From Neoconidiobolus thromboides FSU 785 (lineage: Eukaryota > Fungi > Entomophthoromycota): DNA of 64,000 nucleotides. The stretch is taken from NCBI GenBank assembly GCA_025603075.1, contig MU626310.1, positions 1-64,000 on the forward strand, given 5' to 3'. The translations under genes were made by a program, and so were the position numbers. Below are positions 21,097-27,121 of the stretch, piece by piece. Position 1 is the first letter of the stretch, and every line of letters begins with the position of its first letter. The notes under the pieces were generated by a model, which did not search any database, was not told the origin of the DNA, and was given only the letters and a program-made list of their open reading frames with translations.

Positions 21097-22772
21097 ATAT
21101 ATCATTTAAATCAAACTTAATAAGCTCTTTAATCAATTTCTTTACAAGTTTTTCTAATATATTTAAACCAAAATAATATATATGTTTATAAAAACTTATA
21201 GGGTCTTAATAGAACTCTGTTAGATGGATTGATTGTTTCAATTTATGATTTGTAGCGTAAACAATATTAATATTCTTTGTTTTATAATGAAATTAAGTAA
21301 TTGTAAAATATTCGATGTTACCAATAGTTTAATGATAATAATTGCAATTCTACTTAATTGAGATTAGTATTACATATAAAAAAGCGAATTTCAAATGAAT
21401 ATAATTACTACTGACATATCAACTGATTTACTATAATTTCATGGTATTATCAGTCTAAAATTTAGCATATAAAATAATCACACTATTCACATAACATTTC
21501 ATTATGATCTATATTTTAATAAAATATTAAACAATTTTAATTCAATAGTAAAGAATGATAGTTTCAGTTTAATTATAAGTAGAATACTTTAATGTTGAAG
21601 CAAATTTCAGGAGTTTGATTTTTAAGATCATTCATGTTCATTAATTTTAAAATATTATTCAACACTTGGCAATTTCTTGAATTTCTATTTATAATTTTGA
21701 TTGTTGTTTAAAACATTAAAAAAGGGGTTCAAAACTCAAACGTAAGCATAAAGAGTAAGATTGAAATGAAATAAATAATAAGTTTATATACAAATATTCT
21801 ATTTTATTTATTTTTTATTTTTTATTTTTATTTATTAATAAAATAAACTGACAATAAAAGTTCCATATTACAAAAGAATAACTTTTCTCACACAGATCAA
21901 AAATGAACTAATAAAATATTATTGAATTCTTAACTAATATCCTTATTTTCATATCATTTTTTCATGTTCTTGGTTTTTTTAGGCTATTTAGTGTTGAATT
22001 TTGAAATTTTATAATTGAACATTTATAAAATATTAGAGACTTTTCTAAATTTAGAAACAGCACAAATAAAATGGAATCTCATTTAAAGTTTGATTTAAGG
22101 TTTGAAAGGAATCCAACCATTATGCAGCTAAAAAGATGAGTGGCTTTGAAACCAAATAAACTAAAATTGATTTTTAAACCTAATTTAATAACAATCATAA
22201 AAAGTAATGATATTTTAATGTATTATATAATATTTATATTAATAAACATATCCAAAACAATGTCATAATAATCATTAATTAATCAGATTTAATTTATTAA
22301 TAACAATTTGCTATGCCACTCTTTCTATAATTAACTTCTATTCTCAATGGTTATAAATACGTACAATAACACTGTTATCTTTCACCACTTTATTAATTGC
22401 AAAACATCTTGTAATTGAGATTAGCCAATCATCAATCAATATTTTACTATTTCTGCTTTTTTATTAAATTGCGTTTAAGGTCAGTGGGCACATGATTTAT
22501 ATATTTAGTAATCGAGTAATTTTTTTAGTTACCAATCATTTTCATCAATGGCTCAAATAAGCCATTCATGTTCAGTTTATAGCGTAATAAATTGAATGAA
22601 ATTAAGGTTACTCTATAAATTTTGAATTTCCCCAGGAAATTTGGAATTACATAGTCAAATGCTTAAGTCTGAAAGAACAATGCTATTTAAATGAACAGAG
22701 TAGAATCATCTCAATTTCTTTCTAATAATTTATTTTAAAATTTTAATTATATAAAAAAATAATTCATTAAAT

Positions 22773-24545
22773 ATGAATCCAGTTAGCTTCCATACCGATG
22801 AAGACAACTTTGAGGCCTTTGTTAATCAAGATATGTTTTTAGATTCTTTTGAAAATAACTCTATTCCTTCTCCAAATACCTTTTCTTCGCAATTAAATAT
22901 GAATAGCGTTAATGACTTTAGTACAAACTTTGGTAATCAAGCTTCTCATTCCCCTGAATTAAACCATAACAGTACTTCTCCTTCCTCTTGGATATCTAAT
23001 TCTTTAACAACACCAACACTTCTACCTACTTCTGCTTTAACATTAGAAGAATGGAATAGCGTTTGTCAATTAGGTCTCGTGGACTCTTTCCCAGTGAATA
23101 ATGGTTTAGTTCCAGAGCTTTCTAGTAAAATAAATCCTATTAACAAAATGGATCCAATATTAGAAAACTCAATGATGATGCCCATGTTCCAACAAATTTA
23201 TTGTGCTAAAGATTTTTCTACTAACCAACAATCTCATGGCTCCAATGACTCCCCTTCTTCTCAAAATAATTCGGAACCGCTATCCTCAAAATCAACCAGT
23301 AAAAATACAAGAAAAGCTGAATCCGGTAAAAGTAAGCAAAAGAAAAAAACAAAATCAGATTTCCATCCAATTCGCAACGCTTATGCCACTCTAAATAAAA
23401 TGCCTGTAATCATTGCTCCTAAACCTGGACCAGTTGAATCTAAAATTTATGTACCAGTACCACAACCTAAAAATGGAATGGTAAAACTTGAACCACAAGA
23501 AGCCACTCTTGAAAGCCCTTATGTACCGGTTAAACAACCAGAGGATAATGCACGTCAAATGGCCTTAACAAAGAGACAGGAACGCTTAATAAAGAATCGT
23601 GCTGCAGCACTTAATTCTCGTAAACGTAAACGTGAACAGGTGATTCAACTTGAAAATGAAAACAATCGTCTCAATGTTGAAAATGCTCATTTAAAATCAC
23701 GCATCGAAGAATTAGAACTTATGGTACTTTCACTTGGTGGTAACCCAACACATACGAATTTACCTAGTTTACAATCGATCCAAGTACATCAACAAGAAGA
23801 TATGCATGCTGGTAGTGAAACTGGTACGCATGCCATGGAAATTTTTGAAAGTGAAAAAGGATCATCCCAAAAATCGGTAAATGTAATTTTTATGTTATTT
23901 TTCTTTTCATTTGTTCTATTCTCTTACCCCACGGTGAGCAATCATTATAATTCCAGTATAACTTTACCCAGTAATGAGCCAATTTTAACTGAACGTGTTA
24001 TTAGTGAATTAGCTACCAAAGCCCAAGTGAAACCAAGCTATAGTGTACGTCATCCAGATGGTACCCCACAATACCATTACCCAGAATTAAGCACTAGAGC
24101 TAGTGATATGGTCATTAGTCATGTATTTTCAGTTCAACAACAATTAAAAAAAGAAACCAATACCCAAGAATTATTCAGTTATGTCAACCGTAACTATCAA
24201 AACAAAAAGAAGGAAGAGATATGTCAAGCACCTGTTGAGGCCAATAATATGGAACAGGAACAAAAGCCAAATAAAATAACAGATCTTATACCATTTGCTC
24301 AAGAGTCCAAGATAGCTTACCTTTATGCATCTACTATTCGTTCATTTATTCCACGTCAAGGTAATAATTCAGAAGATTTATCATCCAAGGATATGTTATG
24401 TGAGAAACCTACTATGTTTTCTGTGCTTACGCCATGGAGAGAAGATTCTGGCTCTTATTCTACTGATGAACGCTATCTTCGTATCGATATGCAAGTTATT
24501 GGTAGTCCCCAAATTGTAAATGGTAAAGATCTTTTGAGGCACTAA
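22773..24545 (+). CDS. Membrane-tethered bZIP transcription factor, ATF6/CREB3-like architecture (590 aa, intronless)
   Basis: Acidic N-terminus; basic region KRQERLIKNRAAALNSRKRKRE plus leucine zipper (23571-23730); hydrophobic segment VNVIFMLFFFSFVLFSYPTV (23877-23936); C-terminal domain with NxS sequons. Confidence 0.85.
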   Translation: MNPVSFHTDEDNFEAFVNQDMFLDSFENNSIPSPNTFSSQLNMNSVNDFSTNFGNQASHSPELNHNSTSPSSWISNSLTTPTLLPTSALTLEEWNSVCQLGLVDSFPVNNGLVPELSSKINPINKMDPILENSMMMPMFQQIYCAKDFSTNQQSHGSNDSPSSQNNSEPLSSKSTSKNTRKAESGKSKQKKKTKSDFHPIRNAYATLNKMPVIIAPKPGPVESKIYVPVPQPKNGMVKLEPQEATLESPYVPVKQPEDNARQMALTKRQERLIKNRAAALNSRKRKREQVIQLENENNRLNVENAHLKSRIEELELMVLSLGGNPTHTNLPSLQSIQVHQQEDMHAGSETGTHAMEIFESEKGSSQKSVNVIFMLFFFSFVLFSYPTVSNHYNSSITLPSNEPILTERVISELATKAQVKPSYSVRHPDGTPQYHYPELSTRASDMVISHVFSVQQQLKKETNTQELFSYVNRNYQNKKKEEICQAPVEANNMEQEQKPNKITDLIPFAQESKIAYLYASTIRSFIPRQGNNSEDLSSKDMLCEKPTMFSVLTPWREDSGSYSTDERYLRIDMQVIGSPQIVNGKDLLRH

Positions 24546-24719
24546 AAAATCTAGAAATTTAGAAATTTACCTTAAAAGTGTTTATACTTAAAAAAAAAGT
24601 CATTCTTTTGTAAAATAAAATTTTTATTCCCTTGTAATGTTTATTGCTAGTGTTATTTATCATACTTGATATGTATTTTGTCTTTAATTTAATTTTAAAA
24701 CAAATTATACTCAATTGTT

Positions 24720-24900
24720 TTTTATCAGATTCAAGCCATCCTTTCCGATAGTGGTGCCATTCTCAAATGTTAGAAGCTGGAACCCAGTTAATTCTTTTAT
24801 TAAGCATTAAAGTTTCTTTCTAATTCTCTTAGCTTTCTCTTCTCCTTTCCAGAATTTTATTTATCTTTGTAAATAAATCCCATCATTAAGGATCTTTGCA
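24720..24900 (-). mobile_element. Possible LINE ORF2 C-terminal relic
   Basis: Minus frame IKFWKGEEKAKRIRKKL*CLIKELTGFQLL recalls the post-RT FW.G....RI....LC..K..GG motif of L1/Tx1-like elements. Confidence 0.25.
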
Positions 24901-25363
24901 TAATTTTCAATAAATTATAAGTTATAATTGCATATATGGAGAAAGTTATAAGTTAATTTGGTATTTAGCCTATTTTATCCTATTATTATATAATATTATA
25001 GGCTTTTGAATATTGTTAGTTTAATACTATAAAATATAAAACTAAGAATAATAGTTGCATTTATTTTTATGATGAAGTGATAGGGGGGGCATTTTAAATC
25101 CTTTTAAAAGATATTGTTGGAGATAAATTTTAGACTAACTCCACTATCCGTTTTTTTCTTTTGCAGAATTCGATCAAAGTTTCTTTCAATGAATTTGCAG
25201 TCTTTAAACCAACCATATTTTTACAAAAAGTAAAAATATTGAGATAAGTTAATAATCAATGATTGACCCAAAATTTGTTTACTAAGTTACAAAATAAAAT
25301 TTAATAATGATGCCAACAAAGCATTTTTCATCAATCAAATAGTAAAAATTACATAAATTAAGT

Positions 25364-26185
25364 ATGGGTGAACTAGAAAAAAAGAAGATAAGTGTAGAAG
25401 AATGGAAGCAATTGATTAACCAAGTGGATGTTTCTAAAAAGTAAGAGTAATTTTTTATCATAAATAAAAATGATATTAAAAGGTTAGTGATCTTAACCGG
25501 TTAATTATGGATTATTTAGTAATCGAAGGATACAGAGATGCAGCTGAATCCTTTTCTCAAGAAGCAAGTATAGCATCAGAACTCGATTTTGGCTCTATTG
25601 ATGAACGCATGAGAATAAGAAACGCTATTCAAGCTGGGAATGTTGACGAAGCTATTGAAAGGACCAACGATATTAATCCAGAGGTAATCTTTTTTTGATT
25701 ATGAGTATAAAAAGTTGATAGATTTGCTAAAAATTATAAAGATATTAGATACCAACCCAGATTTATTTTTTCATTTACAACTACAAAAATTTATTGAGAT
25801 GATCAAAGAACGAAAAGATAAACAAGCCTTAGAATTTTCCCAAAATGAACTAGCAGCACGTGGAGAAGAAAATCAGCATTTATTAAAAAAGTTAGAAAGA
25901 GCTATGACTTTATTATGTTTTAAAACGGAAGATAACCCACATATTGAATTATTAGATTATTCTCAAAGATTAAAGATGGCTTCAGAACTTAATGGAGCTA
26001 TCTTAGCTGCTCAAGCTTTAAATAAAGAACCTAAATTACCTACCCTATTAAAACTTACCTCGTGGGCTCAAAACAGGTTATCTAATGAAATCGTTTTTCC
26101 TATTATTAAAGATCTCACTGGAGCTACCCTTTCTTCCCCTATAAGCGATACCGCTTCTAGCTTAGATGACCATTCTATTGATTAA
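25364..26185 (+). CDS. GID8: GID8/TWA1-like CTLH complex subunit (introns 25441-25487, 25684-25741)
   Basis: LisH (LNRLIMDYLVIEGYRDAAESF), CTLH (RMRIRNAIQAGNVDEAIE) and CRA regions; two GT-AG introns join the ORF pieces in frame. Confidence 0.92.
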
Positions 26186-27121
26186 ATGTTTAGGGTCTTT
26201 TTATGCATGTTTTAGGTTGATTCTATGGGTGGATCTGATTCGAATTAAACATTGTAATTTTAATTTTAATTTTTGTCGGTATTACGAAGGTTTACATTTT
26301 TTGTGGAATAAACTTTATTGATTTATAAAGTGCATTATATTATATATCTGTCGTTTAACAATATAATCACCATCAAATTTTTAATTTATTATTTGTCATA
26401 TGTAGTGAAGCGTCAGTATATACTAAAAACGATTAAGAAGCTTATATTTTAGCTTACTTTTAAGTTTCTTAACAGCTTTAATATCTAATATTTATATTAT
26501 TTAAATTTATGATACTAATAAAATACTTATTAAATATTATAGTGTAAAAGAAAATAAAAAATTAAATTGAATTAAATAATATCTGGAACTTTTTAATATC
26601 TCTTGCTTAATCTATTAAATAGCAGTACTAATATTAGAGTAGATTTTAGTGCATATTAGCATATTCTTTTACTTTGCAAATACTCATCCAGAATCGTTGT
26701 GTGTAAGAAAACGGATAAATATTCTTACATAAAATTTCGACGTAAAGAGCTAGGTTTATATGTAGAAGGTTTCCAGGAATACATGTATGGACGAAATGGT
26801 CTGTTATACTAGAATGATCTACAATTGAACTAAATTAAAAAAGTATCAAAATCTAACTACAATTGAGTTTTTAAATTTCTTGAATAACAGCTTCAAACTT
26901 ATTTTAATTACTTGATTTACCAGTTAAACTATTATTTATTCAGTAAAAGTATTTTGCTATTATTTTTAGCTACGATTTATATTTATTTCATGTGCTTACA
27001 GCAATATTTATATTTATAAATATTTTGTATAGTGTTAGTATTGTTATACTTGTGAATAAAAGTTATGTTAGGCGAGATAATGTATTAGTCAATAGTGACA
27101 TCTTTTCGAAATAATAGATAT

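Follow-up and report, generated by a model that had tools for sequence, protein, structure and literature searches.

The forward-strand gene at positions 22773 to 24545 of the window, that is, of the whole analysed stretch of 64,000 nucleotides (positions 1 to 64,000 of contig MU626310.1, assembly GCA_025603075.1, of Neoconidiobolus thromboides FSU 785), probably represents a fungal and apparently undescribed branch of the ATF6 family of basic leucine zipper (bZIP) transcription factors. Its product, hereafter the window protein (P0001), combines an acidic N-terminus, a bZIP, a single transmembrane (TM) segment and a tail predicted to face the endoplasmic reticulum (ER) lumen, and comparison of family profiles makes it quite likely that the TM-plus-luminal part shares its ancestry with that of animal ATF6. 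To date, ATF6 has been ascribed to metazoans or holozoans, plants being credited with functional analogues, and fungi have been described as having only the IRE1-Hac1 arm (PMC10512342, PMC6025073, PMC4736632). A survey of bZIP proteins found the ATF6-specific domain in unicellular holozoans, did not detect it in fungal orthologues and took HAC1 to stand for the ATF6 group in fungi (PMC4736632). Our literature search, which left most subscription journals outside its reach so that a prior description is possible, found no report of a fungal ATF6-like family for early-diverging fungi, Mucor, chytrids or opisthokonts, and no match for accession GCA_025603075.1.

The open reading frame (ORF) runs intact from ATG to stop over 590 amino acids (aa), is the sole long ORF here on either strand and has the same translation as the NCBI gene model on this contig. 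The gene and the features of its product up to the membrane are:
22773-24545, + strand: complete, intronless gene for the putatively membrane-tethered bZIP protein P0001 (ORF, NCBI model, RNA contig).
22773-23282, + strand: acidic Ser/Asn-rich N-terminal region, a putative activation domain (aa 1-170; residue counts).
22800-22847, + strand: family motif EDNFEAFVNQDMFLDS (aa 10-25) inside the N-terminal region (family alignment).
23328-23360, + strand: basic patch KSKQKKKTKSD (aa 186-196), a possible nuclear localisation signal (position in the family alignment).
23568-23726, + strand: bZIP (aa 266-318) with basic region KRQERLIKNRAAALNSRKRKRE and a five-heptad leucine zipper (Pfam PF00170).
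23877-23936, + strand: single TM segment (aa 369-388) with conserved Met, Phe-Ser-Phe and terminal Pro (hydropathy, alignment).

Residues 1-170 hold 18 Asp plus Glu vs 3 Lys plus Arg, and the family alignment keeps a DDLxxSFLNxD motif in this region. At the site of the KSKQKKKTKSD patch, relatives carry a conserved KKKRGRKKRE patch; most family members have the basic patch EQPKKKRGRKKRE well 5' of the bZIP (alignment A1, columns about 380-395), which resembles an AT-hook or a signal for nuclear localisation. The bZIP matches Pfam bZIP_1 (PF00170) with an E value of 3.7e-11, clearing the curated cut-off, its basic region is invariant throughout the family and five heptad leucines follow it in the window protein. 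The only strongly hydrophobic segment ends in FSYPTV, and its Kyte-Doolittle mean over 19 residues, 1.97, is the maximum of the protein. A hydrophobic segment is conserved in all relatives with the family pattern VFM...FSFALFxLP, of which nine relatives keep M, F, S, F and P without exception. Lys residues stand on the N-side of the segment, no charge on its C-side, and the tail of ~200 aa behind it contains the sequons N393 (NSS) and N531 (NNS). Because the N-terminus is hydrophilic and has no signal peptide, and given the N-side Lys residues and the C-side sequons, we infer a type II orientation with the N-terminus in the cytosol. The earlier note, made from the sequence alone, had described an acidic N-terminus, a bZIP, one TM segment and luminal sequons; all are present, and the resulting bZIP-TM-tail layout is real and conserved across early-diverging fungi.

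A word-based search gave ten relatives at about 25% identity in Mucoromycota and Chytridiomycota. A profile built from the TM segment and tail only, with the bZIP excluded (A2), was then scored against 1.84 billion representative proteins and matched 95 at E<=1e-3, of which 71 passed E<=1e-10 and 20 passed E<=1e-30, with an upstream bZIP signature in nearly all full-length matches. About 45 of the matches could be named and all belong to Chytridiomycota (including Spizellomyces, Rhizophlyctis, Polychytrium, Cladochytrium and Powellomyces), Zoopagomycota (Entomophthora, Basidiobolus, Coemansia, Thamnocephalis and Syncephalis) or Mucoromycota (many Mucorales, Endogone, Actinomortierella, Calcarisporiella and Bifiguratus), with no label more specific than "hypothetical" or "bZIP domain-containing". 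Dikarya, which dominate sequenced fungi, and animals contribute none of these about 45 named matches. A maximum-likelihood tree from the bZIP to the end of the protein recovered a chytrid clade (support 95) and a clade of Zoopagomycota plus Mucoromycota (98), and grouped the window protein with Entomophthora muscae (99); since the tree follows taxonomy, it argues for old vertical inheritance, and it points to a source organism that is probably entomophthoralean-like. Two diverged paralogues each occur in Radiomyces (P0005/P0044), Apophysomyces (P0015/P0020) and Dinochytrium (P0095/P0123), a pairing that may be likened to the ATF6 alpha and beta paralogues of vertebrates. The proteins P0125 of Phlyctochytrium bullatum and P0127 of Irineochytrium annulatum match the additional Pfam families PF04515 and PF05153 beside the bZIP, and their gene models are probably fused with a neighbour. 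No Pfam model covers the luminal part, the window protein and genuine ATF6 alike matching bZIP models only, and PDB sequence searches with the protein and both luminal profiles returned no solved relative of it.

Within the luminal tail, four blocks of the window protein correspond to family motifs and stand opposite blocks of ATF6:
24165-24197, + strand: helix block QELFSYVNRNY (aa 465-475), family DLxxWIxxxL, opposite DLRxWVSRV of ATF6 (alignment, global hhalign).
24309-24335, + strand: block KIAYLYAST (aa 513-521), family YLYxP, opposite DTFYLxSYS (alignments; short strand in the AlphaFold2 (AF2) model).
24405-24434, + strand: block KPTMFSVLTP (aa 545-554), family (R)P(R/K)xSLxSP, opposite RPRFSLLMP (luminal-only hhalign).
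24471-24518, + strand: block RYLRIDMQVIGSPQIV (aa 567-582), family YLQIDVEVxGSRxV, opposite MQIDCxVINTKMV (hhalign).

The animal side of this comparison came from a word search with the bZIP and TM segment of a chytrid member, the chytrid basic region being one that we take to be nearer to that of ATF6 than those of the other members. The search gave one animal match, the oribatid mite protein P0129 (E 0.23), which was used as a lead; the luminal part of P0129 retrieved twelve mite proteins and is 59% identical to that of P0137, named ATF-6 alpha-like at NCBI, and on this basis P0129-P0141 are taken as ATF6 orthologues. The bZIP profiles of the two groups match at 98% probability, which reflects generic bZIP similarity. 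The test of relationship used profiles with neither bZIP nor TM segment, built from 49 fungal (A3) and 12 mite ATF6 (A4) luminal sequences. In hhalign these matched with a probability of 39.9% (E 3e-4) over 57 columns, pairing RP(R/K)xSLxSP with RPRFSLLMP and YLQIDVEVxGS with MQIDCxVINT. The first block contains a Ser that varies little or not at all among the fungal sequences and that stands opposite an invariant position of mite ATF6. In the second block (RYLRIDMQV at aa 567-575 of the window protein), L569 and D572 never vary and V575 hardly varies among the 49 fungal sequences, and they stand opposite the invariant M, D and V of mite ATF6. With the TM segment included, the local score was 35.2 vs 13.3±2.4 (maximum 21.8) for 100 column-shuffled templates, and the global score 28.5 (P 2.3e-5) vs 2.6±1.9 (maximum 11) in shuffles; a reversed template scored at noise level. 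The global alignment contains five colinear blocks, namely the TM segment, the DLxxW helix, the aromatic-Y block, RPRxSL and QID. The helix block is predicted to be helical in the window protein and, taken alone, is weak evidence. Separate subsets of the family reproduced the result: the chytrids and an entomophthoralean trio that includes the window protein matched the same ATF6 columns at P 1.3e-4 each, and the Mucoromycota matched the same region at P 2.6e-3. Overall luminal identity between the fungal family and ATF6 is below 20%.

The strongest single argument for common ancestry is, in our assessment, a transitive link through P0088, an environmental protein from a ~2.1-kb JGI contig (locus L003) with companions P0119 and P0120 in Logan contigs. 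P0088 was retrieved by the fungal profile at E 6e-6 in the library search and combines the fungal-type N-terminal motif and TM segment (FSFA...NP) with an ATF6-type QIDCEV block. Against the fungal profile its tail scores 97.2% (E 4.5e-11), against the ATF6 profile 92.4% (E 5e-7) with 33% identity across 80 columns; once P0088 is included among the fungal sequences, their match to ATF6 rises to 67% in local and 92.5% in global mode. The tree places P0088 with mite ATF6 (SH-aLRT 93, long branches), and its source may be a deep fungal or other opisthokont lineage. The C-terminal likeness to ATF6, which the earlier note had drawn from two blocks of the metazoan protein, thus holds at the level of the family, whose profiles align on both blocks, and through P0088 (92-97%); for the window protein taken by itself it does not reach significance. 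The profile comparison with ATF6 that the same note had set as a test found similarity at this family level.

Together, these features are probably explained by an ATF6-related, ER-tethered bZIP that is released by stress-triggered proteolysis. The window protein would be a type II bZIP precursor held inactive in the ER membrane, where the conserved luminal region, a helix and three strands, would keep it until a luminal signal arrives, most plausibly protein-folding stress by analogy with ATF6. Trimming in the juxtamembrane luminal stretch would come first and would be followed by an intramembrane cut at the Pro/Ser-containing end of the helix, probably by a site-2 protease (S2P)-type M50 protease; the acidic activation domain and bZIP would then be freed to the nucleus and act alongside a separate IRE1-HAC1 arm. 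S2P substrates require helix-breaking residues (Asn/Pro) in the TM segment. The segment has an invariant Pro at its luminal end (SYP, without Asn, in the window protein; NLP in Entomophthora; NP in P0088), which fits this requirement. An Stp1 (S2P)-like gene has been reported in Mucor circinelloides, and Cryptococcus lacks an obvious site-1 protease (S1P) (PMC7298709), which makes S2P-type release plausible in these fungi, with the first cut perhaps made by another protease.

Several observations weigh against an ATF6-type sensor, or against parts of the scheme. The first concerns the initial cut, for which the earlier note had pointed to one motif:
23994-24005, + strand: RVIS (aa 408-411), candidate luminal juxtamembrane cleavage site (loose R-x-hydrophobic-x pattern).
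The motif does lie ~20 residues past the TM segment and fits the loose pattern, and in that sense is a possible S1P site; conservation lends it no support, since it has no counterpart in the closest relative, Entomophthora (P0069), and no RxxL site is conserved in the clade of the window protein. In mite ATF6, a conserved GPSR[SAT]LLW about 25 residues past the TM segment corresponds to the expected S1P-type site. Coemansia and relatives have PRLL[LI] at the same distance from the membrane; in the juxtamembrane stretch of the chytrids we find G[KR][AV][FY]S and [RKH]LLDAPP, and in that of the Mucoromycota xLTVGG and (R)xxLLDAAP.

A second observation concerns the signal. ATF6 luminal cysteines serve a redox-controlled oligomer state, and all mite sequences in the set keep the Cys of their QIDC block. 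Fungi have V, M or L in its place (M573 in the window protein), so redox control through this residue is not conserved. The absence of the redox-sensitive Cys, together with the sequence between the luminal blocks, which varies greatly and is mostly modelled as disordered, would suit a true ATF6 homologue that responds to another input, such as membrane or lipid state, secretory load while hyphae grow or a host is invaded, or a developmental cue, comparable to the way in which animal CREB3-type factors and plant bZIP17 act. We found no direct evidence against such an input, and consider it unlikely because the luminal blocks that the fungi conserve are those held in common with the ER-stress-sensing ATF6.

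The remaining observations bear on homology itself. No animal ATF6 came up at E<=1e-3 when the fungal TM-plus-tail profile was run through the whole library with HMMER, which disfavours a close relationship. Direct profile-profile probabilities are 35-54%, about 40% for the luminal parts, and derive mainly from two short blocks; the ATF6 profile represents a narrow group, oribatid mites only. Neither the window protein alone (P 0.1) nor the Coemansia subset matched the ATF6 profile significantly, and the N-terminal regions of the fungal family and ATF6 show no significant similarity (hhalign P 0.23). Global-mode hhalign was unstable and degenerated for luminal-only sets and subsets, and we therefore relied on local mode and shuffles. 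The AF2 models of the tails are of low confidence, with a mean predicted local distance difference test score (pLDDT) of 61.8 for the window protein and 49.4 for mite ATF6, so that only the order of secondary structure can be compared. A fold search of the Atlas with the model of the window tail gave nothing above a TM-score of 0.33, and ESM Atlas feature and structure look-ups with the tail and the whole protein returned nothing beyond generic bZIP clusters and the Zoopagomycota cluster to which the protein belongs; a row labelled "ATF6" in these look-ups had a TM-score of 0.15 and was discarded as meaningless. P0088 has no taxon assignment and sits on a long branch. The assignment was made by comparison with mite ATF6, and the relationship may be orthology to ATF6 or membership of a wider membrane-bZIP clade.

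Low direct probabilities, the silence of HMMER, the result for the window protein alone, poor structure models with empty fold searches and the missing N-terminal similarity are what would be expected of a fungus-specific tethered bZIP unrelated to ATF6 beyond the generic bZIP, in which two short luminal motifs had arisen by chance or by convergence, for example as a strand-pairing or sorting signal. Against such an origin, the scores lie 9-13 standard deviations above column shuffles, three separate fungal subsets match the same ATF6 columns, five blocks keep a common order in proteins with a shared bZIP-TM layout, P0088 is significant to both sides, and invariant fungal and ATF6 positions coincide. 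We therefore regard an unrelated fungal protein as improbable and retain descent from a common ancestor with ATF6. That the window protein is a soluble nuclear bZIP with a long C-terminal tail, its hydrophobic segment not serving as an anchor, is most improbable, given a hydropathy peak well above the usual threshold of 1.6 in what is, the basic region aside, the most strongly conserved part of all relatives, aligning with the ATF6 TM segment through a common VFM motif.

The ORF is beyond chance, as indicated by base composition, RNA, third-position differences and the 95 relatives with TM segment and tail. GC content is 0.32-0.37 in the coding stretch vs 0.19-0.25 in the AT-rich flanks. Among the 33 ORF differences listed for related strains and species, 30 fall on third codon positions (binomial P 8e-12), a concentration that shows purifying selection on the protein. 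The gene has a dynein heavy chain gene on one side and a LisH/CTLH gene on the other, and contigs from four public runs were placed on positions 21300-26700 of the window. In three of the four runs only genic parts of this region were covered and intergenic DNA was empty. The LisH/CTLH neighbour (25383-26329, + strand) is expressed; its RNA contigs, one of which has a poly(A) end at ~26329, lack two GT..AG introns (25441-25487, 47 nt, and 25682-25739, 58 nt). The genic-only coverage, the removed introns and the poly(A) end show that these runs contain RNA. In the best-matching run, a 1824-nt RNA contig spans 22781-24602 with 100% identity to the window and no joint; the bZIP gene is therefore transcribed and intronless, with no sign of unconventional splicing of the Hac1 type. 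Identity with Hac1 was also considered and rejected on account of the TM segment and the unjoined RNA contigs. No element resembling an ER stress response element was seen by eye upstream of the gene (22400-22560, + strand). Two CCAAT boxes lie 210-350 nt 5' of the start codon, neither followed nine bases on by a CCACG-type half-site.

Set beside metazoan ATF6, as represented by the oribatid-mite orthologues, the fungal family shares the acidic N-terminus, the bZIP and a single TM segment about 90 residues past the basic region (94 residues past the basic-region Asn in the window protein vs 88 in mite ATF6), followed by a luminal tail of 200-300 residues in both. Both TM segments have the VFM motif and a helix-breaking Pro at the end, and the luminal blocks come in a common order: DLxxW helix, aromatic-Y strand, RP(R/K)xSLxxP and (M/L)QIDxxV. 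The weak AF2 models suggest a similar order of secondary structure, with helices on the DLxxW region and then strands on the three C-terminal blocks; in the window protein the KPTMFSVLTP block is modelled as a strand with a pLDDT of about 88. The families differ in that the mite GPSRxLLW has no conserved counterpart in the clade of the window protein and that the ATF6 RRDDTFY block is much weaker in fungi. Other membrane-bound or stress-responsive factors are more distant in organisation. Plant bZIP28 and bZIP17 and animal CREB3/OASIS have, by description only, the same type II bZIP-TM-luminal layout; bZIP17/28 and CREB3/OASIS are released by S1P and S2P, and to our knowledge CREB3-type luminal tails are short and have no QIDC-type block. 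Fungal Hac1 and animal XBP1 are likewise bZIP factors of the ER stress response, Hac1 being activated by IRE1-dependent mRNA splicing; Hac1 is soluble, whereas the window protein has a TM segment and a luminal tail. The fungal SREBP, Sre1, is also a membrane-bound transcription factor and is released proteolytically via S2P (Stp1) in Cryptococcus (PMC7298709). SREBP differs in being a bHLH-zip hairpin with two TM segments, a SCAP-binding cytosolic C-terminus and no luminal sensor domain.

From an evolutionary point of view, the distribution of the family suggests a stress-sensor family older than the split between animals and fungi that survives in early-diverging fungi. An ATF6 arm may already have existed in the last common ancestor of animals and fungi, working beside IRE1-HAC1 in all major non-Dikarya phyla and being lost at the base of the Dikarya, a scenario that we put forward tentatively and about which doubt slightly prevails. 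If true, the origin of the sensor would move back to the opisthokont ancestor, its loss in the Dikarya would be identified, and the one-armed fungal unfolded protein response of textbooks would be a derived Dikarya state. Mucor, Rhizopus, Phycomyces and Spizellomyces would then offer simple, tractable hosts for the poorly understood luminal sensing of ATF6, and the blocks common to fungi and animals would point to its most important residues.

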